Of a stretch of 64,000 nt of DNA, positions 15,222 through 64,000 are shown piece after piece. The stretch's first letter is position 1, and the number at the start of each line of letters is the position of its first letter. The stretch is from Anaeramoeba ignava BMAN (Eukaryota > Protista > Anaeramoebae): NCBI GenBank assembly GCA_028826165.1, contig JAPDFW010000103.1:620001-684000 (forward strand), read 5' to 3'. The notes beneath the pieces are model-generated. The model was not told the origin of the DNA and searched no databases. It saw only the letters and a list, made by a program, of their open reading frames with translations. Both the position numbers and the translations under genes were made by a program.

Positions 15222-16985
15222 ATGAATGATTGTTTATTTTTTGGTTCAAATAAATTACCAAAACTTATCAAAAATGAACCATATGAAATAACAAAACCAA
15301 TTCAATTTAAATTTGAAAATGAATTTGAATTTGAAAATGAAAAACAAATTAAACAAATTTCATCAGGAATATTTTCAACAATTTTCCTTTTTGAAAATGG
15401 AAAAGCAATAAAATATTTAAAAGATTCAAAACAAAATCCTTCAAAAATCCAAATTGAAAATATTCAAAAAGTAACTGTTGGTTATCGAAATGCAGCTATT
15501 TTAACATCAGAAGGAAATGTATTTGCAAAAGGAAGAAATATTAATCCAGATAATTCAAATAAATTTATCAATATTTCATCATTAATTGACGATACAAATG
15601 ATAGAATAATTGAAGATATTGTTTCTGGATATAGTTCAATTTACTTATTAACTTCAAATCAAAATGTTTATGGAATTGGTTCAAATCTTTCTAATCAACT
15701 TGGTTTAGATTCTGAAACACTTCCAAAAACAAAAAAACCAATTTTAATGATGAAAAATGTTTCTAAAATATTTTCAGGATTTTCAACATCTATTTTCCTT
15801 TTAAATTCAAATCAAGAATTATTTGGATGCGGATTTAATAGATATGGTAGACTTGGATTAGGAATCAAAGAAACAAAAATCCAAAAATTAACCAAAATCC
15901 AAAATATTCCAAAAGGTAAAATAATTGATATTCAATGTGGATATTCACATTCAATAATGTTGATTGAAAATGAAGATGAAAATCAAAATCCAAAAAGAAA
16001 ACTTTATTCATGTGGAAATTATCAATATAATGGACTTGGCAAAGATGGACATGTTTATGAATTTACTGAAATCAAATCATCTTTATTTGAAAATGATGAT
16101 ATTCTTGATTTTTCTGTTGGTGAATCTCATAATTTGATTTTAACTTCCAAATCAAAATTGATAGTATTTGGGAATAATGATTATGGTCAATTAGGAACTG
16201 GAAATACAAATAATCAATCAATTCCAATTCAAATTGAACTTCCTAAATTAAGATTTAAAGAAGAAATTTTCAATTATCATGTTTCTTGTGGATTTAATAA
16301 TTCATTTCTTTATTATTCTCCTTTTCTTTCTTCTTTTTCCAATATTGAAGAAGATTTGATAAAATTATTTGAAAGAAAAGAATTTTGTGATATTTCATTT
16401 AAAACCAAAAATGGAGAAATAATTGAAGCTCATAAATTAATATTGAAATATAGATTAAATCAAAATCAAAATGAAATTGAAAAACTTCAAGAAATTATTT
16501 CAAATAAATCAATTAAAGAATCAAATCAAATATTTGAAATGATTTATTCAAATAATTCCAAAATAAATCCAAAATTATATTCTGAAATTAAAGAAATTAT
16601 AAATTCAAATGAAAAAATTGAAGAAACAATGAAAAGAATTTATTTAAATGAAAATGAAAATGAAAAAGATTTTATAATTGAAAGAAAAGAAAAACAATAT
16701 AAATTTCCTAAATTAATATTAATAATGAGAAGTGAATTATATCGAGGAATGTTTTTATCTGTAACAAATGATACTTCAAATAAAGTTACAGATTATAGTG
16801 AATTAAGTAATAATTCATTTCAAATACTTGAATATTGGATTTATTCAAATCAAATTAAAGATGAAATTGAAATTACACAAGAAATTATTGATGAAATTCA
16901 AATTGGAATTGATTATTTTCAATTAAATCAAACAAATCCAAATTTATTTGATTTATTAATTAAGAAATTTAATAATCAAAATTAA
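15222..16985 (+). CDS. RCC1-repeat + tandem BTB protein, copy 3 (intact, 587 aa)
   Basis: Uninterrupted ORF, same architecture. Confidence 0.9.
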   Translation: MNDCLFFGSNKLPKLIKNEPYEITKPIQFKFENEFEFENEKQIKQISSGIFSTIFLFENGKAIKYLKDSKQNPSKIQIENIQKVTVGYRNAAILTSEGNVFAKGRNINPDNSNKFINISSLIDDTNDRIIEDIVSGYSSIYLLTSNQNVYGIGSNLSNQLGLDSETLPKTKKPILMMKNVSKIFSGFSTSIFLLNSNQELFGCGFNRYGRLGLGIKETKIQKLTKIQNIPKGKIIDIQCGYSHSIMLIENEDENQNPKRKLYSCGNYQYNGLGKDGHVYEFTEIKSSLFENDDILDFSVGESHNLILTSKSKLIVFGNNDYGQLGTGNTNNQSIPIQIELPKLRFKEEIFNYHVSCGFNNSFLYYSPFLSSFSNIEEDLIKLFERKEFCDISFKTKNGEIIEAHKLILKYRLNQNQNEIEKLQEIISNKSIKESNQIFEMIYSNNSKINPKLYSEIKEIINSNEKIEETMKRIYLNENENEKDFIIERKEKQYKFPKLILIMRSELYRGMFLSVTNDTSNKVTDYSELSNNSFQILEYWIYSNQIKDEIEITQEIIDEIQIGIDYFQLNQTNPNLFDLLIKKFNNQN

Positions 16986-33500: not shown

Positions 33501-36500
33501 AATTTGAATTTAATTTGAATTTAATTTGAATTTAATTTGAAATTTATTTGAATTTAATTTGAATTTAATTTGAAATTAATTTGAAATTAATTTGAATTTA
33601 TTTTGAAATTAATTTGAATTTAATTTGAATAAATTATTTTGAATAAACTAATTTGAATTTAATTTGAATTTAATTTGAATTTGAATTTAATTTGAATTTA
33701 ATTTGAATTTATTTTGAATAATTTATTATTTTGAATTTAATTTGAATAAATTGTTTTGAATTTAATTTGAATTTGATTTGAATTTGATTTGAATAAATTG
33801 TTTTGAATTAATTTGAATTTAATTTGAATAAATTGTTTTTAATTTGAATTTAATTTGAATTTAATTTGAATAAATTGTTTTGAATTTAATTTGAATTTGA
33901 TTTGAATTTAATTTGAATAAATTATTTTGAATTTAATTTGAATTTAATTTGAATTTAATTTGAATTTAATTTGAATTTATTTTGAAATTATTTTGAATTT
34001 AATTTGAATAAATTGTTTTGAATTTAATTTGAATTTGATTTGAATTTGATTTGAATAAATTAATTTGAATTTAATTTGAAATTAATTTGAATTTAATTTG
34101 AAATTATTTTGAATTTAATTTGAAATTAATTTGAATTTAATTTGAATAAATTAATTTGAATAAATTAATTTGAATTTAATTTGAATAAATTAATTTGAAT
34201 TTAATTTGAATTTAATTTGAATTTAATTAATTTGAATTTAATTTGAATTTAATTTGAATTTAATTTGAATAAATTGTTTTTAAATTATTTTGAATTTATT
34301 TTGAATTTATTTTGAATAAATTATTTTGGATTTAATTTGAATTTAATTTGAATTTAATTTGAATTTAATTTGAATTTGATTTGAATTTAATTTGAATAAA
34401 TTAATTTGAATTTAATTTGAATAAATTAATTTGAATTTAATTTGAATAAATTAATTTGAATTTAATTTGAATAAATTAATTTGAATTTAATTTGAATTTA
34501 TTTTGAAATTATTTTGAATTTAATTTGAATTTAATTTGAATAAATTAATTTGAATTTAATTTGAATTTAATTTGAATTTAATTTGAATAAATTAATTTGA
34601 ATTTAATTTGAATTTAATTTGAATTTAATTTGAATTTAATTTGAATTTAATTTGAATTTAATTAATTTGAATTTAATTTGAATTTAATTTGAATTTAATT
34701 TGAATTTAATTTGAATTTAATTTGAATTTAATTTGAATTTAATAAATTTAATTTAATTTGAAATTTAATTAATTTTGAATTTAATTTGAATTTTGAATTT
34801 ATTTTGAATTTAATTTGAATTTAATTTGAATTTAATTTGATTAAATTATTTTGGAATTATTTTGAATTTAATTTGAATTTAATTTGAATTTGATTTGAAT
34901 TTAATTTGAATTTAATTTGATTAAATTATTTTGAATTTAATTTGAATTTAATTTGATTAAATTATTTTGGAATTATTTTGGAATTATTTTGAATTTAATT
35001 TGAATTTAATTTGAATTTAATTTGAATAAATTAATTTGAATTTAATTTGAATTTAATTTGAATAAATTAATTTGAATTTAATTTGAATTTAATTTGAATT
35101 TAATTTGAATTTAATTTGAATTTAATTAATTTGAATTTAATTTGAATTTAATTTGAATTTAATTTGAATAAATTGTTTTTAAATTATTTTGAATTTATTT
35201 TGAATTTATTTTGAATAAATTATTTTGGATTTAATTTGAATTTAATTTGAATTTAATTTGAATTTAATTTGAATTTGATTTGAATTTAATTTGAATAAAT
35301 TAATTTGAATTTAATTTGAATAAATTAATTTGAATTTAATTTGAATTTATTTTGAAATTATTTTGAATTTAATTTGAATTTAATTTGAATAAATTAATTT
35401 GAATTTAATTTGAATTTAATTTGAATTTAATTTGAATTTAATTTGAATAAATTAATTTGAATTTAATTTGAATAAATTAATTTGAATTTAATTTGAATTT
35501 AATTTGAATTTAATTTGAATAAATTAATTTGAATTTAATTTGAATTTAATTTGAATTTAATTTGAATTTAATTTGAATTTAATTTGAATAAATTAATTTG
35601 AATTTAATTTGAATAAATTAATTTGAATTTAATTTGAATTTAATTTGAATAAATTAATTTGAATTTAATTTGAATTTAATTTGAATTTAATATGAATTTA
35701 ATTTGAATTTAATTAATTTGAATTTAATTTGAATTTAATTTGAATTTATTTTGAATTTAATTTGAATTTAATTTGAATTTGATTTGAATTTAATTTGAAT
35801 TTAATTTGAATTTGATTTGAATTTAATTTGAATTTAATTTGATTAAATTATTTTGGAATTATTTTGAATTTAATTTGAATTTAATTTGAATTTAATTTGA
35901 ATTTAATTTGAATTTGATTTGAATTTAATTTGAATTTATTTTGAATTTAATTTGAATTTATTTTAAATTTAATTTGAATTTGATTTGAATTTGATTTGAA
36001 TTTATTTTGAATAAATTGTTTTTAAATTATTTTAAATGAAATTGCTTCAAATCAAACCTTCAACCATAATTGGAATCATAACATCATCAGCTCCTTTAAT
36101 CAACAATATTAATTCTTTTGTATCTTCATTTCTCAAAAGAACAGACATTTTCTTTCTTTCACTAGTAAATGCCAAAACTTTTACAACTTCATATCTTTCA
36201 ACAATATCATTATAAGCAAACTCAACAATATCTCCTGTTCGAGCTTGCAAAACAAACCCCAATTTCTGGGCAGCAATTACTAAAGCTTCTTCATCTGGAG
36301 AACTTGATTGATATTCAATTTGATCCTCTTTTGCTTTGATAGGAACAACTGTATTGCATAATGCAAGAATGCGAAAGAAATTAACAGCATTCTCGTCTTG
36401 ATTATCAATCGCAGATAAAAGATCAGCATCTTCATAAGCAGATGCTCGTTTTGTTGAATGTCCATAAATTGTATTTGAAATCGAACATTTTTTAAAAACC

Positions 36501-43217: not shown

Positions 43218-44675
43218 TTAAATGAAATAAGTCTCAAGTTCATCAACAATCCATTTATTACAAGAACCAGCTAAATAACTTTTAGCTTCATTTGTTTTAA
43301 ATTCAATTCCATTAGGCAGATTGTAACTAGAACCAAAATTTGAAAAGCCAGGTTTATGAAAATTAGAAGTCAAAGCAAAATCGGGATCTCTATATTTTCG
43401 ATAAGGAAATCCAAAACATGGACCATAATCTAATTCAGAATCAATTGCATATCCTTCTTCGCCTTTTTTAATTGTGAATTTTTGAGGTTTTCGATCATTT
43501 TTATCATTTCTTAATGAAAAAATAAAAGCATTTGCATCAAATTGAGGTCCTGAATCATCATTTCGATAAAGTTTATGCCATTTTGATTTATCTTTTGGGA
43601 AAAATCCAACTTCTGTAAATCCTCCAAAAATAAAACCATTTGTTGTTTTCATAATAACTAATGTTTTCCCTTTATTGTCAACTTTTTTATGCCATTTTTT
43701 AGAAGAAAATCCATTTCTTCTCGCTGAAAATCCTTTTTTCATTTTGGAAAAGAATTTATCATCATTTATCCATTCTTGTAATTTAGAAGCATATTCGTTA
43801 TCTTGAATAATTTTTGATGATTTAAATCTTGATTGGAAAGTTAATTCTTTTTCATGTAAATTTGTTTCTTGAAGTTTTTGGAATTGAATTAATTGTTCTG
43901 AAATTTGTTTTGGAATTAAATCTTCTTTCAAAATATCTTTAAGTTCTTCTTTTGAAAAATCAATAAATCTTATTTTTTCAATAACATTTGAAATTTGATT
44001 TTGTAATTTTTCTTTTTCTTCTTTTTCAAGTTCTTTTTCTTGATTAATATCTAATTTATGTTTTCCCCATTTTATTATTGATTGAAAAAGTTCAAATTCA
44101 TTTATTAAAATATCATGATTTGATAATATTGAATTTAAATGATTTTCTTCAAGTTCAAGAAAAAAAGAAGTTTTAATAAATTTATCAAAATTTTCAAAAA
44201 TAAATTTATAAGAAGAATCTATTAATTGATTAAAGTTCATTGCTTCAGATAATTTAAGGATATCAACAACAGTTTCAAATTGTAAATTGTTTTTAATAAA
44301 ATTTGAACAAATTTCAATTAATTCATCAATTAAATATTTTGATGAAAAAAATAAAATTTGAATTGCATTTTCTAAATTAATTTCAATTTTTCCTGAATAA
44401 AAATAATTTAAAATTGAAGATAGAATTGAACTTGAAACATCTTTTAGAATTAATTTATTTTCTTGATATTCTTTCATTTTGGAATTAAAAAGAGATTTAA
44501 AATATTCACTTCTTGAAGAAAGAATTGATTTATGAGTTTTAATTGAAGTTTGATTTTGTTCACAAATTATTTCAAAATCAAAATAACTTTCTTCTTCTTT
44601 TTCATTTTGATTTTGATTTTGAAATAAATTTTTTAAATCATTTGAAAGTTTTTCTAAATTTGAATAATTTTCCAT
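43218..44675 (-). CDS. BTB-BACK-TLDc protein (485 aa), paralogue of 27239
   Basis: Near-identical BTB/BACK, divergent TLDc loops. Confidence 0.9.
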   Translation of the reverse strand: MENYSNLEKLSNDLKNLFQNQNQNEKEEESYFDFEIICEQNQTSIKTHKSILSSRSEYFKSLFNSKMKEYQENKLILKDVSSSILSSILNYFYSGKIEINLENAIQILFFSSKYLIDELIEICSNFIKNNLQFETVVDILKLSEAMNFNQLIDSSYKFIFENFDKFIKTSFFLELEENHLNSILSNHDILINEFELFQSIIKWGKHKLDINQEKELEKEEKEKLQNQISNVIEKIRFIDFSKEELKDILKEDLIPKQISEQLIQFQKLQETNLHEKELTFQSRFKSSKIIQDNEYASKLQEWINDDKFFSKMKKGFSARRNGFSSKKWHKKVDNKGKTLVIMKTTNGFIFGGFTEVGFFPKDKSKWHKLYRNDDSGPQFDANAFIFSLRNDKNDRKPQKFTIKKGEEGYAIDSELDYGPCFGFPYRKYRDPDFALTSNFHKPGFSNFGSSYNLPNGIEFKTNEAKSYLAGSCNKWIVDELETYFI

Positions 44676-47613: not shown

Positions 47614-49398
47614 TTAATTTTTATTTTGATTATTAAATTTATTAATTAATAAATCAAATAAATTTGGATTTGTTTGATTTAATTGAAAATAATCAATTCC
47701 ATTTTGAATTTCTTCAATGATTTCTTGTGTAATTTGAATTCCATTTTTAATTTGATTTGAATAAATCCAATATTCAAATATTTGGAATGATTTATTACTT
47801 AATTCACTATAATCTGTAACTTTATTAGAAGTATCATTTATTACAGATAAAAACATTCCTCGATATAATTCACTTCTCATTATTAATATTAATTTTGGAA
47901 ATTTATATTGTTTTTCTTTTCTTTCAATTATAAAATCTTTTTCATTTAAATAAATTCTTTTCATTGTTTCTTCAATTTTTTCATTGGAATTTATAATTTC
48001 TTTAATTTCAGAATATAATTTTGGATTTATTTTTCTATTTGAATAAATCATTTCAAATATTTGATTTGATTCTTTAATTGATTTTTTTGAAATAATTTCT
48101 TGAAGTTTTTCAATTTCATTTTGATTTAATCTATATTCCAATATTAATTTATGAGCTTCAATTATTTCTCCATTTTCGGTTTTAAATGAAATATCACAAA
48201 ATTCTTTTCTTTCAAATAATTTTATCAAATCTTCTTCAAGATTGGAAAAAGAAAGAGGAGAATAATAAAGAAATGAAGTGAAAGCACTACAATAAACATG
48301 ATAATTAGAAATATTTTCATTAAATCTTAATTTAGGAAGTTCAATTTGAATTGGAACTAATTGATATTCTTCTTCATCTTCTCGAATTAAAATACCTAAT
48401 TGATTATAATGGTTATTTCCAAATCCTATCAATTTTGAATTGTATGTTAAAATCAAATTATGAGAATGACCAACAGAAAAATCAAGAATATTATCATCAT
48501 CATTTTCAAATAAAGATGATTTGATTTCAGTAAATTCATAAGTATTTTTATCTTTGCCAAGTCCATTATATGTATAATCTCCACATGAATAAAGTTTTCT
48601 TTTTGGATTTTGATTTTGATTTTGATTTTGATTTTCAATCAACATTATTGAATGCCAATATCCACATTGAATATCAATTATTTTACCTTTTGGAATATTT
48701 TGGATTTTGGTTAATTTTTGGATTTGTTCTTCTTCTTTTCTTGATTCTCCTAATCCAAGTTGACCCTGATCATTATTTCCGCATCCAAATAATTCTTGAT
48801 TTGAATTTAAAAGAAAAAAATGATTTGAAGAATTTCCTGAAAATATTTTAGAAACATTTTTCATCATTAAAATTGGTTTTTCTGTTTCTGGAAGTGTTTC
48901 AGAATCAAAACCAATTTGACCATAATCATTTGAACCAATTCCATAAACATTTTGATTTGAAGTTAATAAGTAAATTGAAGAAACACCAGAAACAATATCT
49001 TGAATTATTCTATCATTTTTATCTTCAATTAATAATGAAATATTGATAAATTCTTTTGGATTTTTTGAATTAATATTGTATCCTTTGGCAAATACATTTC
49101 CTTCTTTTGTTAAAATAGCTTCATCGTAACCACCAACAGTTACTTTTTGAATATTTTCAATTTGGATTTTTAGAGGATTTTGATTTGAATCTTTTAAATA
49201 TTCTATTGCTTTTCCATTTTCAAAAAGGAAAATTGTTGAAAAATAACCTGTTGAAATTTGTTTAATTTGTTTTTCATTTTCATTTTCATTTTCATTTTCA
49301 TTTTCAAATTTAAATTGAATTGGTTTTATTATTCTCATTGATTCATTTTTGATAAGAATTGGATCATGATTTGAACCAAAAAATAAAATTTCATTCAT
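47614..49398 (-). CDS. RCC1-repeat + tandem BTB protein, copy 5 (intact, 594 aa)
   Basis: Uninterrupted ORF. Confidence 0.9.
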   Translation of the reverse strand: MNEILFFGSNHDPILIKNESMRIIKPIQFKFENENENENENEKQIKQISTGYFSTIFLFENGKAIEYLKDSNQNPLKIQIENIQKVTVGGYDEAILTKEGNVFAKGYNINSKNPKEFINISLLIEDKNDRIIQDIVSGVSSIYLLTSNQNVYGIGSNDYGQIGFDSETLPETEKPILMMKNVSKIFSGNSSNHFFLLNSNQELFGCGNNDQGQLGLGESRKEEEQIQKLTKIQNIPKGKIIDIQCGYWHSIMLIENQNQNQNQNPKRKLYSCGDYTYNGLGKDKNTYEFTEIKSSLFENDDDNILDFSVGHSHNLILTYNSKLIGFGNNHYNQLGILIREDEEEYQLVPIQIELPKLRFNENISNYHVYCSAFTSFLYYSPLSFSNLEEDLIKLFERKEFCDISFKTENGEIIEAHKLILEYRLNQNEIEKLQEIISKKSIKESNQIFEMIYSNRKINPKLYSEIKEIINSNEKIEETMKRIYLNEKDFIIERKEKQYKFPKLILIMRSELYRGMFLSVINDTSNKVTDYSELSNKSFQIFEYWIYSNQIKNGIQITQEIIEEIQNGIDYFQLNQTNPNLFDLLINKFNNQNKN

Positions 49399-49460: not shown

Positions 49461-51294
49461 TTAAAAAATTAAACAATTTTCTTTCTTTTTTTCGTTTTGA
49501 ATTGTTTCTTTCTTATTGTTTTTATTTTGATTATTAAATTTGTTAATTAATAAATCAAATAAATTTGGATTTGTTTGATTTAATTGAAAATAATCAATTC
49601 CTATTTGAATTTCATCAATTATTTCTTGTGTAATTTGAATTTCTTCTTTAATTTGATTTGAATAAATCCAATATTCAAATATTTGAAATGATTTATTACT
49701 TAATTCACTATAATCTGTAACTTTATTTGAAGTATCATTTATTACAGATAAAAACATTCCTCGATATAATTCACTTCTCATTATTAATATTAATTTAGGA
49801 AATTTATATTGTTTTTCTTTTCTTTCAATTATAAAATCTTTTTCTTTTTCATTTAAATAAATTCTTTTCATTGTTTCTTCAATTTTTTCATTAGAATTTA
49901 TAATTTCTTTAATTTCATAATATAATTTTGGATTTATTTTTCTGTTTGAATAAATCATTTCAAATATTTGATTTGATTCTTTAATTGATTTATTTGAAAT
50001 AATTTCTTGAAGTTTTTCAATTTGATTTTCATTTTGATTTAATCTATATTTCAATATTAATTTATGAGCTTTGATTATTTCTCCATTTTTGGTTTTAAAT
50101 GAAATATCACAAAATTCTTTTCTTTCAAATAATTTTATCAAATCTTCTTCAAGATTGGAAAAAGAAGAAGAAGAATAATAATAAAGAAATGATCTGGAAT
50201 CTCCACAAGAAATATGATAATTGAAAATATCTTCTTTAAATCTTAATTTAGGAAGTTCAATTTGAATTGGAGTTGATTTATTTTCTATATTTCCAGTTCC
50301 TAATTCACCAGAATAATTATCTCCAAATCCTATTAACTTATTATTGGAAGTTAAAATCAAATTATGAAAATTTCCAACAGAAAAATCAAGAATATTATCA
50401 TCATCATTTTCAAATAAAGATGATTTGATTTCAGTAAATTCATAAGTATTTTCATCTTTGCCAAGTCCATTATATGTATAATCTCCACATGAATAAAATT
50501 TTCTTTTTGGATTTTGATTTTGATTTTGATTTTGATTTTCAATCAACATTATTGAATAACCATTTCCACATTGAATATCAATTATTTTACCTTTTGGAAT
50601 ATTTTGTATTTTGGTTAATTTTTTGATTATTGTTTCTTTTCTTGATTCTCCTAATCCAAGTTGGCCATAATGATTATATCCACATGTAAATAATTCTTGA
50701 TTTGAATTTAAAAGAAAAACATAATTTGAAGAATTTCCTGAAAATATTTTAGAAACATTTTTCATCATTAAAATTGGTTTTTCTTTTTTTAAGTGTTTTA
50801 GAATCAAAACCAAGTTGACCATAACGATTTGAACCAATTCCATAAACATTTTGATTTGAAGTTAATAAGTAAATTGAAGTTCTTCCAGAAACAATATCTT
50901 GAATTATTCTATCATTTGTATCTTCAATTAATGATGAAATATTGATAAATTCATTTGGATTTTTTGAATTAATATTATTTCCTTTGGCAAATACATTTCC
51001 TTCTTTTGTTAAAATAGCTTCATTTAGATAACCAACAGTTACTTTTTGAATATTTTCAATTTGGATTTTTTGAATATTTTCATTTAAATATTCTATTGCT
51101 TTTCCATTTTCAAAAAGGAAAATTGTTGAAGATTCGCCTGTTGAAATTTGTTTAATTTGTTTTTCATTTTCATTTTCATTTTCATTTTCATTTTCATTTT
51201 CAAATTTAAATTGAATTGGTTTTATTATTTTATTTGATTTATTTTTTAAAAGAATTGGTTTTTGATTTGAACCAAAAAATAAAATTTCATTCAT
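49461..51294 (-). pseudogene. RCC1-repeat + BTB, copy 6; frameshift near 50785; extended C-terminus ending in CaaX (CLIF)
   Basis: Two overlapping ORFs. aaaaaaagaaaaacc versus aaaaaaacagaaaaacc in paralogues. Tail is NEKKKENCLIF*. Confidence 0.8.
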
Positions 51295-51341: not shown

Positions 51342-54300
51342 TTATTTTTGAAATGTTTTTAAATTCCTTTCAAAATATTTAAATGCTCCAATGCAAAATT
51401 TTAATTTGATTGATTCTGGAAAATTCTTTTCAATTTGTTCATTTAATTGTTCATTTTCTGGTTCAATTTGAATTAAAAATTTTTTAATTTTTTCATTTTC
51501 ATCCAAATTATCTTTTAAAAATGTTGAAATAAATTCTTTCCAAATTCTTTCTAATTCCAAAATTTCATTTTTTGAAAATGAAGAAAATAAATTTGTCATT
51601 TCTTGTTGATAAATTGATAAAATTTTTTTCTTGAATTTTTTTGAAATATTTGGAAAAGGATCAATAAAATATTCTTCGAATTTTTGAGAATAAATTGAAT
51701 ATGTTTAATTTTTACTAAAGATTTAAAATTTGGTGAACTTTTAGAAATTTCTTCAATTTCATGATTTTGTAAATCATTCAAAACATAATCATAAACAGTT
51801 TTTTCAAATAATTCATCTGTAACATTTTTTGGATCAATTTTTTGAATTCCTTGCCAAATTTGTTTTACTAACTCTTGGCAATTCTTTATTTGAGAATGTT
51901 TTTCTAAATCATTTAAAATTTGTTCCCATTCGTTAATTGCTAATTTTTCATCTTTAAATTCTAATTTTGGAATTTGATATTGTTCAATAATTGTTTCTGG
52001 ATTTGAATAAATAAATTGGTTAATCTGGTTAATCTCCAAATCTCTGAAATTTGTTAAATTCATTTTGATTTGAGAATTGATCTTAAATTCCAATATTCTG
52101 AGGAAATATTTATCAATAAATTGATTTTTGAATTCTTTTTCAATTTTATCTGGATCAATATCTAAAATAGAAATTCCATTAAATTTTTCTATTGAAATTG
52201 GGAAAGAAATTAAAAATGGTTTTTCTTGATGATTCCATTCATGATTATTTTGTTGTATTTCTTTTAATTCTTTCATTTTTTTAATCATTTCATTATTTAA
52301 TCTTATAGAATGATTTATCATCATTTCAATAAATAAGTGATTTGGTTCATTTCCTGGTAAACAATAATCAATAATCTGATTTTCATTCATTTTTATATCT
52401 TCAAATTCTTGAGGTAATGATTCTTTTACTATTAAATATTTAATTTCTTTCAAACATAAATTCCAAAACTTTTCAAAATCTTGATAAATTTTTTGGAGAT
52501 TTGTTTTTGAATCCAAATCATTTTCTTGGTTTAAAAATTCATTGATTTTCATAATTTTTGTTTCTTCTTTTCTAATTTTACCATTTAATTCATTGAAAAT
52601 AATACTTGAAAATGTAAGAAATTTTGGGAATAATTTTAGAATTTTTAGCTTATTGGAATTTTCAATTATGAAATGAATAATTGATTTTCTTCTTTCTTCT
52701 GGATTTTTGGAAATCATTAAATCAATAATCTCAAAAATTTCATTTCTCTCAAAAGAAATAAACATCCATTTCTTTTCTGATGAACTCTTCTTAATTTCTT
52801 GAATAAGTTCATTTTTTTCAATTTGCTCAGAAAAAATAGATTCAAGAATTTTTTGATTATTTTTTTGATAAATATCTTCCACTATTTTTTCAAATGAATT
52901 TCTTCCTTCAATATTTTTAAAATCTATAACGCTTTGTTTTTGTGATTTAAACTTGGATCGGAAATTTGATAATATTTGATAATAATAAATAAGTGATTCT
53001 TCTTTTGAAAACTTTAATAATTTTGTGAATATTTCAAAATCATTTTCTATGTGTTCTAAAAATGAATTAATTAAATCATCTTGATTTTTTGATTGAAAAA
53101 AAAGATCATTCAATATTGAAATGAAATTTTTTGATGCTTTTTCAGAAATGATAATAAAGGGTAAAAAGAAACAATGAATAGCCAATCTAATAAATCTGAA
53201 AATTATTGGATTTAACTCTCGAATTGAATAAAGTGGATTTGTATTTGGATATTTGCTGAAAGTGTAAGAAAATGGTTTTTTGAAAAAGCTTTTCTTAATT
53301 CCATCATTTTTTATTATTCTTGAATCACAAATCCTGCATTTCATTAACTTTTCTTCATTTGGCTTGTTGATAATATTAATGTGATTATTCTCACAAATAA
53401 ATATCTTGTTGAGATTTTTGATTAAATCTTCTGGAAATGTAGCTTTTGGTGTTGTTGGCCAATGTATTTCCCTCATTTCTTCAATTTTTTCTTTTTCTGT
53501 ATTTCCAGTTTCAAGAATAAATTTTAATAAAGAATAAAAAGGTTCTAAATTAATTTTAAGAAAAATTTCTGTTGTTGAAAGAATCATATGAATAATTTCT
53601 TTTGATTTAACTTTTTTATCAATCATCCCCAAGTTTTGAGCTATCATCTGAATTTCTTCTGAACTTTCTTCAACAATTTCATCGGGAATATTTGTTAAAT
53701 AATTATTTTTAATCCAAAAATTTAAAACAGTAGATTTCTTGAATAAGTTATTTGATAATCTTTTTGAATTAGAATAAGATTTGATTAGATTTTTTGCTAA
53801 ATCATTTTTTTTTAATTTTCCATTTTGAATAAAATTATTAAGTTTTTCTTTTCCATCATTTCTGTAAATATATTCTAATAAAAACAAAATCCAATCTTTT
53901 CCTTTATTTTCAAAATTAAAGTGTCTAAATTTTTGAAGGAGAATTTCTGGTTGTTTTTTCAATTCTTTTCTTAATTTTATAATTTCAACAATTTTTTTTA
54001 AATTAAAAGGTTTTTGAATAATTTTAATTGCTGGATCTTGTTTAACTTTCATTTCTTTTTCTTTTTCTTTTTCATTTTCATTTTTCATTTTCATTTTCAT
54101 TTTCATTTTCACTATCACTATTACTTTCACTATTACTTTTACTTTCAATTTCTTTTTCAGAATCTGAATGTGAATCTGAAGGTGAATCTGCATCTGCATC
54201 TGAATCTGAATCTGAATTTGATTTGGAGTTATTTTTTTGATTTTCATTATTTTCATCATTTTCATCACTTTCATCACTTTCATTATTTTCATCATTTTCA

Positions 54301-57300
54301 TTATTATCATTATTATTATTATTATTTTTATCTTCAATATCAATATCAATATCAATATCAATATCAATCTTATTATTTTCCACAAATTCACAAACTTTCT
54401 CAAATAATTTTTCATTTTCTTCAAAAATTTTTAAAGTATTAATTGAAACCCAATTATAAATATTATCATAAATTGTTTTTTCATCACATTTTTTTATCAT
54501 TCCATTTATAACTTGAAATATTTCATTATAATATCTTTCATTTAATTCTTCTTCTTTAAATAAATTTTCAAAAAATGTTCCTAAAACTGTATTGTAAATT
54601 AATTCTTTTTTCATTTTTAATCCACACAAAAAACTATTTTCTAAATCTCCAACAATAAATTGCAAAAATTCTTCAACTTCTTCTCCAATTTTTTCATTTT
54701 CATTTTTAATTCCTAAAAATTTGAATTTGAAAATTATTCTTTCAATAATAATTTTACTGAAATATTCCATGAATAATGTGAAATAACGAATTAATTTCTC
54801 AATTTTTGATTTATTCTTTTCAATTATTTTTTCTTTTGTAAAATTTATAAAATGCGTTTTAAATTCAGAAACTTTTTGAGAGCAAATTGGGCATTCATAT
54901 TTTTTATTATTTTGTGTGCTTCTTTGAATTCTTCTTTGAATATTTTTTGTATCCTTTTTTGAAATAATTCTTTCCTTAATTTTTTTATTTTGTTTTGTAT
55001 TTGAACAAATTGTGATTTCTTCTTGAGAATTGAATAATATTTCTTCCATTTCTTCAAATCCATTAAAATTAGTTTCAATCCATTTTTTACTTTTTCTCCA
55101 AATTTTATTTTTTGTTAAATCTAATATTGGAGTAAATACTGATTTAATAAATTCTTCATATTTCAATTTTTTTGGATAAATAAACAAATCTTTATTTTCT
55201 TTGATTATTTTCCTAACAGTTTTTTTTGTTCTGAAATGAAGTAAAAGTTTAATTGTTTGTTTTTTAAGAATAATAAGATGCCAAATATTAACAAATTTCT
55301 TAATTTGTTTTTGATTTTCTTTTTCATTTTGGAATTTTTGTTCTTTTTGAAGTATTTTAATCAAATTAGAGAAATTCATTGCAAAAAGAATAATTGAATT
55401 TTCATTTTCATTTTCATTTTGATTTTCATTTTGATTTTCATTTTCATCTTCTTCAAAGTTTAAATTTGAAAATAATTTTAAACAATAATCAATAAAATGA
55501 TAAATTGAAAAACCGTTTCCTATGAAATTTTGAGGATTTCTAAAATCTTCACTAATCATCTCCATTTGATTCCAAATTGAAAATATCATACTTAATTCTT
55601 TTTGAACAATTCCAAAATAAATTTGATGGATTTTAATCAAAAAGTTTTCTTGTTCTTGTTCTTGTTTTTGTTTTGAATTATTCATTTCAATAAATTTAAC
55701 AAGATCAATATTCAATTTATCTATCATTTGATTTTGTTCTTGTGTTAAAGTAAATCTTCGAAAATCATTTATATATCTTGAAATTAAATTTTGATTTTCA
55801 GAACAATTTATATGAAAAGTTCTATTGAGTATTTCAATCAATCCTTTGTTTTCGACTTGATTAAATTTATTTTCTTGGATAATAGAATAAATATGATAAG
55901 AGAATGGGAATTCAGCATTTTGAAAATCATCTTCTGGAAATAAATTAATACATGGAAAATTTCCTGTTGTTATTATATCTTTCCAAAGTTGAGAAACATC
56001 CTTTTGTTTTGAACTCAAAAGAGATAAATTTCCATTTCGATTAACATTATTTAAAAACTTTCCAAATATTTGAATGATTTTTTCAATGAATTGATGATAA
56101 AGAAAGGAATTAAATGATTGATAATTTTCTTGTTCTTTCCATTTTTTTTCAATAAATTCCATTAAATCCCATTTATAAAGTTCAATTTTATATTTCACTC
56201 CTTCTCTTATCATTGAAATTAAAGAATCGTAAACAATTTCTTTAAAATCCTTTTGTTCTTGGATTAATTTTTTGAAATCATTCATTAAAGATTTGAATTT
56301 TAAGCTTGTAGTATCTAAAAATCTAGAAAATGATAATCCAATAATTTCATGAAGAATAAAATCTGAAATATTCTTTTTGTTTCTCTCAAAAACTAATTCA
56401 AGTTGATTTTTTGTTGTCGTTTCAATTTGATTATTATTATAATAATTAAATTCAATTTTTGGAGAAATTTCTTCAATATAATAATATTCCCAAAAATCTT
56501 CAAAACAAAATGAAAATTCTGTTGAATATGGATTTGGTGAAAGATGAATAATGAATATTACATAAAAATATTGTTCTCTTTGTTGAAGAAATTTGTTAAT
56601 TTCCAATTCAATCAAATATTTAGATTGATAAAAAATATGAGAAGAAATTTCATTTGGATTAAAATGAATAAGTAAAATATTTTTTCTCTCTTTCTTATTT
56701 TGGATTTGATTAAAGAATTTTTCTCGAACTTCTATTAATAATGATGAATCAGTTTCAAAATTAAGAAGATTAATTGAAAATAAATTATAATCTTCAGGTA
56801 TTGGAATTTTTTGGTAAATTGGTGAATGTGTAAAAACAATTGAGTTTAAAATTTTATCATGAACCAATTCATTTTGAAACAAATCAAGAAAATTTTGTTT
56901 ATGTAAATCAAAATAGGAACTGCATATTTGATTGATTTGAGATGATTCTATTGAGTTTTCATTGTTTTTCAATAAAATATTTTGCAATTCAACAATTTTA
57001 TCAACCTTACAAAGTCTAATCCAACAATCCATTCCAAATTTATCAAATTGGGATTTATCAAAATTATTGTTGTTGTTATTATTGTTGTTTCTTTTCATTT
57101 TGTTTTGAAGTTTAATTGCAAGTGTTGTGAATAAATTATCGTTATAATTTAAAATTAAATTATTCTTTCCAATTTTTTGTGAAGATAATTTTTTGACATT
57201 TTCCATAATTTTGTATTGTTTTTCTTCAAAATCTTTACAATATGAATTTTTGATAAAATCTTTTGGAATAAATAATTGTTTTTCAAATCGATTCAAAACA

Positions 57301-60300
57301 GCTGGTGATTCATTATCATAGGCTTCTGTTTTGACTAAAACAACAATAACTCGAAATTTTGGATCAATTTGAATTGAATCTGAATTATCTCCAAATGATA
57401 TTCTTGCAAATAATTTGTCTTCAATTTGAATATAATTCTGATTAAGAAGATCATATAAAGGCTCAAAAAGTTGATTGTTATTACATAGAACAATTGTTTC
57501 TCCTAATCTCACTCCAAATTCTACTTTTTTCAAATTTTGAATAATTCTAAGTGAGTTTCCATCTTCAGAAAAAGATGAGCCAAATAAAACAACATTTTTA
57601 GTTTTAATTTGTCTTAAAACAACATTGAAAAGTGAAAGGTTTTCAACAAGAATCATTAAATGTCTTGAAAATTTGTGGATTTCATCTTTAGAAAGTATGT
57701 ATTTTTTTTCTCCTTCTTTTGGAATTAAATATCCTTTCAAGTTTTGTTTAATTAATGATCTTGTTTTTGGGATTTGATTAGGTTTTTGTATTCCCAAAAT
57801 TTGACAAAGTTTGGTTTGTAATTTCTCAAGAAATTCAGGTTTTGATCCAAAATTTCGATAAATTGAATTCCATATTACTTGATTATCAAGATGACTTTTT
57901 TGAAATTTTGATGTTGATTTAGCAATCATTTTTAATAAATAATAAAAATCTCTTAATCCATAATAATTCCTAATTTTTGTATTTTGACTTGCATTTTGAT
58001 TTTGATTTCTTTGATTTTGATTTCTTCGATTTTGATTTCTTCGATTTTGATTTCTTTGATTTTGATTTCTTTGATTTTGATTTCTTCGGTTTTGATTTCT
58101 TTGGTTTTGATTTGGATTTTCATTTTGATTAGAAATTATTTCAAAATAAACTTTTGCTAATTTTTCAGGAAAATCATGAGATATTAATTTAAAAGATTTG
58201 AGTATCATTTCTGAAGTTAATTTAAGTTGTTTTAATGATGGATCAGGTCTTCTTAATAAAATTCCTCTGTTTATATTTGCTGGATCTAATCTCCAATTTG
58301 AAACTGCAAGAACAGAAACTTGTTTTTCAGAATCTTGATTTTGAGAATAATTTGTTTGTTCAAGTAGATGTTGTTTATCTGATTTTTCAAGTTCTGAATG
58401 TAAAACTTTTAAAGGTAAATCTGGACTTAATTCAGCTAATGCAACTTCATCCAAAATAACAACAGGAATAATATCTTTTTGATCAATTTTATTTGCAAAA
58501 TTTCTTGCTGAATCAAAAATATTTTTAATTCCTTTAGCTGTTGTAACAGGAGAACATTGAATATAAAAAGGTTGTAAAGCAGGAAGTCCTCTAACTCTAA
58601 TAAATTGATTTTCACTTCTTGGTCTTAAAATATGCATTAAAAGTTCAATAGAAAGTGATTTAGAAGAACCTTTTTAATTTTAATTTTAATTTTAATTTTA
58701 ATTTTAATTTTAATTTTAATTTTAATTTTAATTTTAATTTTAATTTTAATTTTAATTTTAATTTTAATTTAATTTTAATTTTAATTTTTGATTTTGATTT
58801 TAATTTTAATTTTAATTTTAATTTTAATTTTAATTTTAATTTTGATTTTAATTTTGATTTTAATTTTAATTTTGATTTTAATTTTGATTTTAATTTTGAT
58901 TTACCTGGTTTCCCAACAATAAACAATGGAATTTGAACATAACAACAAATGAATATCAATAACAAATTTTCTTTTAATGCTTCATTTATAGCAACTGTTC
59001 GATCATAAGTATTAATTTCAAGTGAATCAACTAAATTTGATTGAATATTTTCAATAATTTTTTTAATTTCAACTTTTTGAATATTATTTTCTCCTCTTGG
59101 AAAATTAACATATTTCTTCTGAATTTCTTTTAAAAAAATTGTTTTCCTTTCACCAACAAATCGAGTAGAATAACAAACAAATAATGATAATAAAATTGCA
59201 GAATAAACATAATAATCTCCTCTTGAATAAATTAAATATTGGCCTGCTTTATTTTCCAAAAGCCATTTAAAAATTCTTAAAGTTCTTGATGCATCTCTTA
59301 ATGAAACTGAACTTTCTGAATCTATTGAGTTATCTCTAATAAAATTATGAATAAAACATATAATGTCTGTAAAATTTAAACTTATTATTTCTCCTTGCTT
59401 TTCGTTCAAATTGTTTAATTGAATTTCATCTAATGTTTGTTTAACCATTTGTTCTATATATATTTTTTCAATTTCAGGTGTTAAACTTCCAAAGTCAAAA
59501 ATATCTTCCAAAAAAGAATCAGGAATAGGATGAACTCTATAAACCGCTTGTTGAATTTTTCTCATTTCTTCTTGTCTTTCTCCGTAATTGAAAACTAATC
59601 CTTCATTTTTGAGTAAATATTCATTATCATCTTCTTGATTTTGATTTTGATTTTGATTTTTAATTGATTCTCTTAATCTATATGGATTTGCAGCTGCTAA
59701 AAATCTGATGTTATTTGATATTGATCTTCCATTTATTAATCTATCAATCAATATTTCTTTGAATAAAATAATACAATCTTTTGGTGCTGTATTGAATTCA
59801 TCAAAGAAGATATTTACAACAATATTTTGATTCTCATTATTTTCATTATTTTGATTATTTTCATTTTGATTATTTTCATTTTGATTTTCATTTTGATTTT
59901 CATTTTGATTTTCATGATTTTCACAAAAATGTTCTGCTTGTTCAACAATTTCAATAATATCTTTTTGTTTAATTCCTCCATGAATATTTTTGATAAATAA
60001 TTTTTGTTCCATTACTTCTTCAACCAAATATTTAATCAATGCTGTTTTTCCACAACCAGTTTCTCCTAATAAAATAACAGGAATATTTGCAAATAATTTA
60101 TATTGAATATAAACCATCTTCATAAAATTATCTGAAGTTATAACATATCTTGATTTTTTTTCGGCTTTTTGTTTTAATTTTTCTGTATCAATTGGATTTA
60201 CATTCAAACCATTTAAAGTTTCAAAAACATATTCCTTTCCAATTTCAAGTTTTGTTTCACTGGATAATTTATCATGAAAATGGAAGTTATTACGTTGAAG

Positions 60301-63300
60301 ATAAGGTCTAATTGAACTATGAAAATGAGATTCCATTTCTTTTGAATCTCTTCCAATAAGATTAAATCCATTAATTTCTAATTTTTTTCCAATAAATAAA
60401 ACCATAAGACATAAACTTCTTTCTTTCCATTTCACTCTTGTAGAAAGAAGTTTTGATAATTCTTCAAGTTCAGATGATTTGATTTTTTCTGATTTATTTG
60501 TCCAATTTATAGAACGAGAAACAATATTTGCAACAGAATATAAATAAGTTTCAAATAATTGATCAATAAATTTTTTAGCAAGTTCTTCTGGATTAAATTT
60601 GGGTTGATTTGATCTTAATAATTGCATTATAAATGGATCAAATTGAGATTGATCATCTTGGAATTTAAATTAAAAAATTCATATTGAGATAATTGAATGA
60701 TATGACTTTTCATTATTTTCCAAAAATTATTAAAAATTCTGAAAGTTGGTGTTTCATTATCACTAATTTTTTTGTAAAGGTTTATGAATGTTTGTATCAT
60801 AAGCATTTGTTTATCAGGTTCAATATTATCTAATAACTCTTTTCTTATCCGTTTTTGGAATTGTATATCTCCAGCCATTTGAAAATCTTGGAATGTTTCT
60901 TGACTTAATTCAATAAGACGAGCAACTCTTTTCAAATTTAAATCAATTTCAAGTTCAATATCATTTTCATTTGAGATTTTATATTTTTCAAATGAAAAAA
61001 CATCATCATCAAAAATACATTCATTTTCTTTCATATATCTCAATGAAGGAAAAAATCTCAATCCATTTTCTGAATTATAAGCTCTACTGCTTGGTATTTC
61101 GAATGAAAATTCAAATTGAGGTTGAAAATTAATAATTAATTCATTTCCATTTGTGCTAATTTTCCTTCGATTTTCAATTGATTTCCACATTAAAAATTCC
61201 CAAATAAAATCCTTGGTTTCTCTATTTGATGAAAATGGGAATTCAATATGAAAATAATATTTTTTTGTTGTTTTCTTAAAATATTCTTTTTGATAAATAT
61301 CTTGAATTTTTTTGATAGTTTCTGTTTTAGTTCCATTTTTCAATGAAATGTAAAAATATTTTTTTCCCATTTCTTTTGTTTGATAAAAATGTTTCCTAAT
61401 TTGATAAGTTTTCCCAAGACCTGAAATTTTTGAAGTGAATGTTTGATAATTTGAATAATTTGGATAATTGTTTTCGAATATTTCTTGTATTCCTTTTCTT
61501 TCCAAAATTTCAAGTTTTTCTTTAATTTCTCCATCTTTAAAAGCATGTATCAAATTGATGACTTGATATAAATCTCCTGAACATAATAAAACTAATGGGA
61601 ATTTGGTTTTGTAGTTGATTCTTTGTATTTGTTCAATTAAAAAATTGTTGATTGATGTTTTTAGTTCTTGTGGATATAAAATTGTAAAAAGAAAATTTCT
61701 TGGATTTTTTTCCTTTTCATTTGAAAAAATATGAGAAATTGTTTGATCTGTATTATAAATTTTGTAAATTGATAGGAAATTAAGTATGTCTCTTTCTTTT
61801 GTTTTTTTTGAGCAAATTAATACATTTTCTTTTAATGGAAAATGTTCAAAATAACATAAATAAAGTGTTGTCGTGATATCATAAATTTGTTCTTCATCGT
61901 TAAATCTATAAATATATATTTTAGGATCAATTATTGTTCCTTCTCTTTTTTCTAAAATTTCGTTAAATTTATTTTTTAATTGTTCTTGTTTTTCTTGATA
62001 ATTTTGAGGTTTTTTTCTTATACAAATCAACCGATTTTGAATTGAATTTTGAATTGGAAACAATTGAAGTAATTTTGATGTAAAATCAACAATATTTTCT
62101 TCATTAATTAAACTTAATTCTTTCAATTTCTCTGTTTCTAATTTGGGATTAAATAAATGTAAAAGTGGAATAATTTCTTCAATTTCTTGTTTTAAATAAA
62201 AATGATGAAGAATTGAAAAAAATTGTTCTTGTGAGAAAAAAGAAATTAATGGATATTTTTCATAAGCTTTTTCAATTTCTTTTTCCCATTTTTCTAAATC
62301 TTTTTGAAATTCATTTTTAGTTTTTTGAATTTCATTCCAATCATCATTTGGTTTGAGAATTAATTCTTTGTGGTAATTCTTTTTTCGATATTTGAAATGA
62401 GCACAATTCAATAATTTATGAAATAAATGAGGAAGAGTTTCAATTATTGGGAATATTCTTTGAAATTGTAATATATAATTTTGAATATTTTCATCTTGAA
62501 ATAATAAATTAGATGTTTTGGTAAGAAAACTATTTGATTGTTCGATTTCTTCTTTCCTTCTAAAATCTTGGAAAATATAATAAATTTCATATAAAGATTT
62601 AAGATCAATCGAATCATCTTCAATTTCACAAAGAAAAATTTCATTTTCATTTTCAATTTCATTTTCAAATTCATTTTCGTTTTCAGTTTCAATTTTTTGT
62701 TTAAATTCGAAAATAAATTTGCATCCTTTTGAAAACATTTTTGTAATTCTTTCAACAGCTTGTTGTTGGATTGATTTTTTATTCATTTTCAAAGTTTGAA
62801 TAAATTCATGAAAGGTTTTGTGTAAAAATGCAAAATCAAAAGCTCTTTCTTTTTGGTTTTTTTGGAAATCTCTTTCTGATTCATTAATCAAATCTAAAAA
62901 TTGTTCAATATTTGTAAATTTTTTCTCATAATATAAATATTTTGTCATTCTATTTCTAAGTGAATTTAATAATTGAGCTGTGATTGAAAGTTTCGAATTT
63001 CCAGAAGAAATTGATTCAATAATTTTTTGGAATTCATCATTATTTGTTTGTTCTTTCAACCAATCAAGAATCTCTGTATCAAATTTAACAATTTCTTTTT
63101 CGATTTTAATTTCTTTTTCTTTTTCTTTTTCTTTTTCATTTTCACTTTTAGTTTCATTTTCATTTTCATTTTCATTTTCATTTTCATTTTCATTTTCATT
63201 TTCACTTTTAGTTTCATTTTCATTTTCACTTTTAGTTTCACTTTTAGTTTCATTTTCATTTTCATTTTCATTTTCACTTTCTTTTTCATTTTCTTTTTCA

Positions 63301-64000
63301 TTTTCAATTTCTAATTTTGGAATTTCAGATAAAATAACTCTTTTAGGCATTAATTCACCAATAAAAGTTAAAATTTGAGTTGTTAATTTATTGGATGTTT
63401 TGAGAGTTGTTTTTAAAATATCTGATGCTTGAGATAACTGTTGATTTTTTTCAAAAGTTGGTTGATAGAATTTTGGTTCTTCTTGAAATTCAAATTGATT
63501 ACAGAAATGTTGAAATGATGGATAAGTCTCTGTATTTCGAATAATTTTTCTGTAATCTTGAATTTTATCTTGATCAATATTTATCTTTGCTGATCCAGAA
63601 AAAAAAGCTTTATTTAATTTTTTAATTTCAGATTCTAAATCTTCATCTTTTAAATCATTTGAGAAAAATTGATTTAATTCTTCAAAATTAATTGTTTGTT
63701 TTTCAATTCTATACCTTAAATCATCCCATTCTTTTTTAACTTTTGGAATAAGTTCTTCTTGAATTTCTTTTAATAAATTTTCTCTCTTTTCTTTTTTGAA
63801 AAAGTTGATTTTTTCTCTATTCCAAATTTTTAAAAAAATGTAACTTTGTTCTAATTTTTCAAAAAATTCTAAATCATTAAAATTCAAATTAAGAGGTTTG
63901 AAAATCTCGTCAATTTCAGAAAGTTTATGAAAATTTTGAATTTTATCATCTTGAATATATTTTTCTTTTTCAATTTGCGATAAAACATTTTCAATTTCTT
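51342..64000 (-). CDS. RNF213: RNF213 (mysterin)-like giant AAA+ ATPase/E3-type protein, partial (5' end beyond window); intron 58670-58904; single-base frameshifts near 60660, 54082 and 51675
   Basis: TSKISGLGKT, LGETGCGKT, FFDEFNT, AANPYR, YRVHPIP, SVSLRD, spliced VGKPGSSKSLS, QCSP, LDEVALAE..PLKVLH, SNWRLDPANINRG, GLRDFYYLLK, FGSSF, LYDLLNQNY, LNRFEK and an RZ-like CENNH..CRIC appear in RNF213 order. The frame is open to position 64000. Confidence 0.88.
57995..58125 (-). repeat. In-frame 15-bp minisatellite encoding (NQNQR/NQNRR)n within the RNF213-like gene
   Basis: Tandem ttttgatttct(t/tc)g units; translation NQNQRNQNRRNQNQR... Confidence 0.85.

Follow-up and report, generated by a model that had tools for sequence, protein, structure and literature searches.

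A giant RNF213-like gene of Anaeramoeba ignava whose RZ finger keeps its zinc ligands and lacks the catalytic dyad

Introduction

To our knowledge, RNF213 is the only ligase that ubiquitylates bacterial lipopolysaccharide. The present study concerns a giant RNF213-like gene of the protist Anaeramoeba ignava, which occupies the minus strand of a 64,000-nucleotide stretch of genomic DNA (contig C93:620001-684000; hereafter the window, in whose numbering all positions are given) and encodes about 5,000 residues, with an RZ-type motif in its last exon. The assembly spans 42.8 Mb at roughly 20% GC and is eukaryotic. A preliminary description of this DNA, drawn from the sequence alone, had suggested that the RZ finger of the encoded protein is catalytically dead and that the protein could be a pseudo-E3, a decoy or a scaffold, of relevance to the tolerance of intracellular bacteria.

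Studies on human and mouse RNF213 have established how the RZ finger works. The zinc ligands of the human finger are C4505, H4509, C4525 and C4528, with C4516 as the nucleophile and H4537 as the general base; the corresponding mouse residues are C4451, H4455, C4471 and C4474, C4462 and H4483. The account of the human finger from which the preliminary description started, with a Cys, a His and two further Cys as ligands and a Cys as nucleophile, agrees with this literature. Mutation of the nucleophilic Cys or deletion of the RZ finger abolishes autoubiquitylation as well as the ubiquitylation of lipid A, and a His-to-Ala change makes the activity more than 10-fold weaker. The Cys-to-Ser mutant of mouse RNF213 retains autoubiquitylation. 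The docking site for ubiquitin-charged E2 is the C-terminal domain and not the RZ finger. The known activity of the protein does not require the RING.

The RNF213 machine also has an activity that does not depend on ligation, since RZ-mutant human RNF213 still coats the vacuoles of Toxoplasma gondii and no longer ubiquitylates any target. The engineered RZ-dead alleles (human C4516S, H4509A and delta-RZ, and mouse C4462 mutants) resemble the protein studied here in that the nucleophile is lost and the AAA machine is intact; they fail to ubiquitylate bacteria or lipid A and keep Toxoplasma vacuole coating. They are laboratory point mutants, whereas the loss described below is natural, old enough to precede a radiation of paralogues, and includes the general base. 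A precedent for an effector decoy, with bacterial effectors aimed at the RZ finger, was considered and dropped, for the Shigella effector IpaH1.4 targets the RING of RNF213 and not its RZ.

A. ignava is an anaerobic amoeba whose Desulfobacteraceae symbionts live in a symbiosome that is joined to the plasma membrane, and the paper on its genome makes no mention of ubiquitin or RNF213. An expansion of RNF213 has been described in chemosymbiotic bivalves (PMC9993606). The family described below is likewise a lineage-specific expansion in a host of bacterial symbionts; the bivalve case concerns animals, and the catalytic state of the RZ finger is not reported there.

Like human and mouse RNF213, the window protein is about 5,000 residues long and combines an AAA core of dynein type, in which AAA3 and AAA4 are of the active kind, with an E3 shell, RZ ligands in the same place and a C-terminal domain. 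Unlike them, it lacks the RING, the nucleophilic Cys (C4516 in human) and the general-base His (H4537), the loop that bears this His is eight residues shorter, and its N-terminal arm has no detectable sequence similarity to theirs. Closer relatives are eight canonical paralogues in the same genome, such as a 4182-codon frame on contig C70, which belong to the same family, share its architecture, are equally without a RING and are 23-25% identical to it over the C-terminal 700 residues. In contrast to the window gene, these eight score on the Pfam RZ-type zinc finger model (PF20173) and keep the Cys/His dyad. The RZ finger of ZNFX1 is a zinc finger of the same kind, with Cys-His-Cys-Cys ligands; ZNFX1 keeps the dyad, unlike the window protein, and is a helicase rather than an AAA protein. 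A ZNFX1-type RZ is absent from the A. ignava genome, where all eight PF20173 matches are RNF213-like.

An RZ finger with its ligands and without its dyad

The finger lies at 53315-53401 (minus strand), inside an open frame that spans 51599-54430, and has the form C-x3-H-x14-C-x2-C. Its ligand codons are those for Cys at 53393-53395, His at 53381-53383, and Cys at 53336-53338 and 53327-53329. The 14-residue loop that should carry the nucleophile is free of Cys, Ser, Thr and Tyr, and the 40 residues past the CxxC contain no His. Cysteines are scarce in this part of the protein altogether, numbering seven in the 828 residues that follow a low-complexity head, and three of the seven are ligands of the finger. 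Between the last ligand and the next conserved helix there are 36 residues, compared with about 44 in human RNF213, a difference that equals the size of the deleted general-base loop.

The four ligand columns are invariant in all 23 aligned homologues, fish and snail RNF213 included, which argues that the motif is not a product of chance. When a profile of the A. ignava paralogues that share the dyad-less finger was aligned by hhalign to a profile of canonical RZ fingers, the two matched with a probability of 99.1 and an E-value of 7.6e-19; the nucleophile column fell in a gap, and the IGGxxH loop carrying the general base in a gap of eight residues. Column counts give the same picture: the ligands stand at 100% in both clades, whereas the nucleophilic Cys and the base His stand at 100% in the canonical clade and at 0% in the dyad-less one, in which the nucleophile column holds a gap or a non-nucleophilic residue. 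In position and in structure the finger is thus confirmed as an RZ finger that keeps its zinc ligands and lacks the catalytic Cys/His dyad.

It might be argued that the motif is not an RZ finger at all, or that the missing Cys is an error of sequencing or assembly. PF20173, with a gathering cut-off of 27 bits, leaves the window finger, as it does those of most paralogues, unscored even at an E-value of 10; canonical paralogues reached 49-64 bits in that comparison and 46-68 bits in the census of the genome. The HMMER alignment of the dyad-less profile to human RNF213 begins only past the finger. Against this, RZ homology is upheld by the paralogue alignment, the invariance of the ligands, the hhalign match, the column counts and the structural alignment by VIA-align described below. 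As for error, Logan contigs from runs X1 and X2 (one sample) cover 53000-54039 with zero differences and zero gaps, and those from run X4, which belongs to a different study, cover 53143-53314 and 53363-53883 with zero differences. Short-read sequence from two studies, against which the finger was to be checked according to the proposal made at the outset, therefore does not restore the Cys. The finger is identical in a second, near-identical copy, the sister copy on contigs C58 and C116, and 24 further loci have the same architecture. This alternative was rejected, and we give it almost no credence.

A true relative of RNF213

The wider protein is homologous to RNF213. Each open-frame piece of the gene was searched separately, and the exons were never joined. 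The piece at 58663-60669 matches mouse and human RNF213 with an E-value of 2.5e-39 and the piece at 54081-58637 with 8e-40. RNF213 has two active ATPase sites, AAA3 and AAA4; the Walker A and B motifs of both could be aligned and are intact. The exon at 58905-60655 contains both AAA3 motifs, Walker A at 60043-60066 and Walker B at 59794-59811, and, at 58903-58914, the first part of the AAA4 Walker A, which is completed across an intron. This intron of 235 nucleotides follows at 58670-58904, with GT..AG borders and ATTAAA-type hexamer repeats, and its excision yields an AAA4 Walker A that matches its human counterpart across the eight-residue motif. The AAA4 Walker B (58443-58460) belongs to the next exon (54086-58669), as do AAA5-6 and the N-lobe of the E3 module.

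The C-terminal piece required more sensitive methods. Alone, it gave no match in Pfam and no sequence match in the PDB, and a word-index search for homologues returned just the protein itself. The finger modelled by itself reaches a pLDDT of 67 and finds no significant match in the PDB, just weak zinc-ribbon-like rows. A profile built from the dyad-less paralogues only, searched against human RNF213 in the PDB, gave an E-value of 2.7e-14, in an alignment that begins at the helix directly after the RZ finger. Two stretches downstream of the finger had been singled out earlier as resembling the post-RZ region of RNF213, and both align in this profile to human post-RZ helices. The first, at 53174-53227, is a helix of R-x-L-x-P...F-R-x-I-R-L type with family-invariant residues that corresponds to the human helix after RZ; the second, at 53015-53056, contains a His that never varies among the dyad-less paralogues. 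The last 699 residues were also modelled with AlphaFold (pLDDT 77). All nine of the best Foldseek matches to this model are RNF213, at E-values from 1e-12 to 9e-8; the one after them stands at 0.67. VIA-align superposed residues 1-562 of this model on residues 4375-4979 of the human E3 module (9jwg_A) with a Z-score of 17.8.

No RING is recognised by Pfam in the window protein or in the canonical paralogues. At the position of the animal RNF213 RING there is a CxxC (54882-54893) followed about ten residues on by a His; it does not constitute a RING domain and is partly conserved in both the canonical and the dyad-less clade. In the dyad-less clade, no column of conserved Cys other than the ligands occurs in the 600 residues upstream of the finger or in the C-terminal 700 residues.

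Overall, the gene is a true relative of RNF213, with an RNF213-type AAA core and an E3 module and C-terminal domain of RNF213 fold. Here the preliminary description was right at the level of sequence: the AAA-core matches, Foldseek and VIA-align agree on an RNF213-like gene, and its claims that the motif is homologous to RZ, that all four ligands are kept and that no transthiolation Cys lies between the His and the CxxC have all stood.

A species-specific clade of dyad-less paralogues

A search of the A. ignava genome with the C-terminal region revealed about 40 paralogous loci. Those matching PF20173 number exactly eight, all RNF213-like, with the scores already given. With the profile of the dyad-less finger, 25 loci with intact, full-length matches are recovered at 126-201 bits, together with three degraded ones; canonical fingers reach only 33-59 bits against this profile. 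Many of the loci are near-identical pairs, either haplotigs or very recent duplicates, and the distinct lineages come to about twelve.

In trees of the C-terminal 500 residues rooted on animal RNF213, the dyad-less clade has an SH-aLRT support of 99 and the canonical clade of 96-99, and the window gene falls in a dyad-less subclade with a support of 97-98. The nearest homologue in A. flamelloides, whose finger is canonical, groups with neither of the two A. ignava clades. A single loss accounts for this placement and for the split of the tree: the dyad disappeared one time, in the ancestor of the 25-28 loci of the dyad-less clade, which coexist with the eight canonical ones. The case for an RZ finger without its catalytic residue is stronger than proposed, given that the general-base His is also gone and that neither a RING nor a hydroxyl residue in the loop is present. 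It has to be corrected in one respect, in that the finger is no lone oddity but belongs to a whole clade.

When 1.84 billion representative proteins were searched exhaustively with a profile, 225 relatives came to light, and every carrier of the A. ignava-type dyad-less finger among them is A. ignava. Naegleria, Copromyxa and Paulinella also have canonical giants. The databases thus already contain RNF213-like proteins from outside animals, and some A. ignava members have been automatically named "rnf213" in GenBank, including at least one dyad-less member that is called "E3 ubiquitin-protein ligase rnf213". The window locus, which is possibly decaying, thus belongs to a group of naturally RZ-dead RNF213 paralogues confined to one species. 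The zinc ligands are invariant in 25 loci of this clade. Ratios of non-synonymous to synonymous substitution (dN/dS) lie mostly at 0.3-0.85 in close pairs, and an open reading frame derived from a transcriptome, belonging to another member of the clade, bears the dyad-less finger. Together these suggest that the clade is expressed, at least in part, and under some constraint.

Several variations on this theme were also observed. One subgroup (L013, L014, L015, L020 and L036, on C59, C111, C138, C35 and C128) has Ser-Ser-His at the nucleophile position, where residual chemistry is conceivable in view of the autoubiquitylation that Cys-to-Ser mouse RNF213 retains. Other members have gone further: among L032 and L044 (C55, C24) and L040 and L041 (C46, C124), two have the finger deleted and two bear a dyad-less C-x2-H variant. 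The RNF213-type AAA3-AAA4 core matches the genome 158 times, at far more loci than there are RNF213-type C-termini (for instance C93:213074, C93:466375, C93:586332, C64:403292 and C60:741352), which points to a larger superfamily, some giant members of which lack an RZ region altogether. In RNF213-like giants of other organisms, namely a Branchiostoma protein of 4870 residues (P0048) and P0031, P0084, P0063 and P0132 from ENA assemblies, the RZ position holds a degenerate finger with neither a nucleophilic Cys nor an IGGxxH loop, and loss of the dyad may be recurrent across organisms.

A probable pseudo-E3

Of the features expected of a pseudoenzyme, homology to an enzyme, loss of the catalytic residues and retention of the residues that define the fold are found here; signs of expression and of maintenance by selection come from the clade and not from the window locus. 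We consider it rather probable that the gene codes for a giant AAA+ protein of RNF213 type, or did so until a very recent date, and that its RZ finger is kept as a zinc-binding module and not as a ligase active site. The protein is most likely an ATPase-competent, non-ligase paralogue, in other words a pseudo-E3, as far as ATPase activity, zinc binding and loss of ligation can be predicted from its motifs. Judging from the intact AAA3 and AAA4 motifs, it would still bind and hydrolyse ATP; its E3 shell and C-terminal domain would still fold; and it would not accept ubiquitin from an E2 by transthiolation. Its role would then be free of ligation. It might be an ATP-driven sensor or a subunit of a coat or scaffold; alternatively, it might regulate the catalytic paralogues or compete with them. 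The decoy or scaffold role suggested in the preliminary description, and its bearing on the tolerance of bacteria, are conjectures of the same kind, and any such role might concern symbionts or prey bacteria.

Some considerations weigh against this interpretation. As Cys-to-Ser mouse RNF213 keeps autoubiquitylation, the absence of the Cys is in itself no proof of a dead enzyme, although the loop of the window protein is also without a hydroxyl residue. A catalytic residue may, moreover, lie elsewhere in the roughly 5,000 residues, the paralogue comparison having spanned about 600 residues upstream of the finger. The dyad-less paralogues could accordingly still be ligases by another route, either with a nucleophile at a different site or by direct transfer from E2 to substrate through the E3 shell, the C-terminal domain and the CxxC..H remnant. 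Such a route would be helped by the retention of the C-terminal domain, on which charged E2 docks, by the conservation of the remnant at the RING position in both clades, and by the Ser-Ser-His subgroup, whose chemistry could follow that of the mouse Ser mutant. It is opposed by the lack of a RING or any other E3 domain recognised by Pfam, by the absence of a conserved non-ligand Cys column in the regions compared, by the loop of the window protein, which has no candidate residue, and by the finding that deletion of RZ abolishes all activity of mammalian RNF213. Continued ligation by such means seems improbable to us.

The state of the window copy

A further point against a functional pseudo-E3 at this very locus is that the window copy may be a recently dead gene, for it contains two frame breaks, its GenBank models are split and no transcript was found for it. 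This is also the caveat that the preliminary description needed: its assignment of gene family and finger state was sound, and the breaks had to be added.

The gene consists of four open-frame pieces, at 60630-66494 (running beyond the window end), 58663-60669, 54081-58673 and 51599-54430. The first break, at 54081-54085, falls in a linker of low complexity and acidic composition, where a run of five A shifts the frame; its counterpart in the sister copy on C58 has four A and reads through in frame. Logan contigs stop at the 54040-54380 repeat and again at the hexamer-repeat intron. The second break lies near 60655 (within 60630-60669), where no GT..AG intron fits. It is at precisely this point that both sister contigs, C58 and C116, part from the window copy, and they carry about 40 extra bases. 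Three introns were considered and set aside as explanations of these breaks: a 50-nucleotide GT..AG intron at 60657-60706 restores the frame but removes residues that are well conserved with the C70 paralogue; an AT..AC intron near 60655 does not fit the reading frames; and an intron of about 95 nucleotides at 54044-54139 is possible yet unneeded, the sister copy being in frame there.

The sister copy is itself of interest. It is split across two contig ends (C58:585330-594626 and C116:34-4757), is 97-98% identical to the window copy and contains many 1-nucleotide indels, densest opposite window 56.7-57.7 kb; it is either a haplotig with poor polishing or a duplicate in decay. In GenBank the giant gene exists as fragments only. 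The model M0811_02265 (874 residues, "hypothetical protein", window 51599-54220) matches the C-terminal piece at 100% and begins at the first Met past the 54081 break.

The locus could thus be a young pseudogene, one of two decaying copies, with a finger that has no present function and whose dyad-less state was inherited from functional ancestors. The two breaks speak for it, as do the fragmentary annotation, a sister copy at about 98% identity whose indels make it look worse than the window copy, a dN/dS of about 1.4 between the two (in an alignment partly corrupted by the frameshift of the sister) and the absence of a transcriptome open reading frame from the 90% cluster of the window protein. 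On the other hand, open frames of 1955, 669, 1531 and 944 codons would not persist for long without selection in DNA of 20% GC, and such frames in 80% A+T suggest a gene that is intact or has broken only lately. One apparent break proved to be the genuine intron at 58670-58904, and a run of five A is a typical site of long-read homopolymer error, at which the sister is in frame. The short-read contigs merely end at the repeat, and the 54081 break is without confirmation from them. We regard a pseudogene as a possibility to be taken seriously, though a doubtful one; it would concern this copy and its sister, and the pseudo-E3 proposed above remains the favoured account of the gene.

Gene layout and neighbourhood

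The gene is read on the minus strand from an N-terminal arm (60656-64000 in the window), the open frame of which continues to about 66494 in window numbering (contig C93:686494). After the exons, intron and breaks already described, the last coding piece (51599-54080) carries the RZ finger between the C-lobe of the E3 shell and the C-terminal domain, and ends at a stop codon at 51596-51598. The intron at 58670-58904 consists almost entirely of ATTAAA-type hexamers, with two frames open, and is easily mistaken for coding low-complexity sequence.

The neighbourhood is crowded with genes for RCC1 repeats plus BTB and one BTB-BACK-TLDc gene (3366-4808, 12307-14079, 15222-16985, 47614-49398 and 49461-50849; also 43218-44675), which resemble Cullin-3 adaptors. 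The RCC1-repeat plus BTB units measure about 2 kb, are 88-96% alike and also adjoin the sister copy on C116. At 1-2000 and 34001-36000 the GC content falls to 7-9% with a GC skew near +1, presumably in simple repeats.

Concluding remarks

How the ATPase-driven formation of an RNF213 coat relates to the ligase chemistry of the protein is an open question in the field. If three quarters of the A. ignava family have lost the dyad and yet kept the finger, and, at least in the window member, the ATPase motifs, then these paralogues would be ready-made separation-of-function proteins. The name "E3 ubiquitin-protein ligase rnf213" that GenBank gives to a dyad-less member probably overstates its chemistry. 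More speculatively, the radiation of at least 25 ATPase-competent, ligase-less paralogues could constitute a non-catalytic layer of recognition or coating, or a set of regulators of the eight catalytic ones, that evolved alongside the Desulfobacteraceae symbiosis. It would be a protist counterpart of the immune families rich in pseudoenzymes, with coating naturally split from ubiquitylation; we hold this broader picture only tentatively. It would extend radiations of the kind known from cell-autonomous immunity, with catalytic and pseudoenzyme members, to a protist that lives free and without oxygen and harbours symbiotic bacteria, and, if true, it would mean that a non-ligase form of the RNF213 machine can persist through an extensive radiation.

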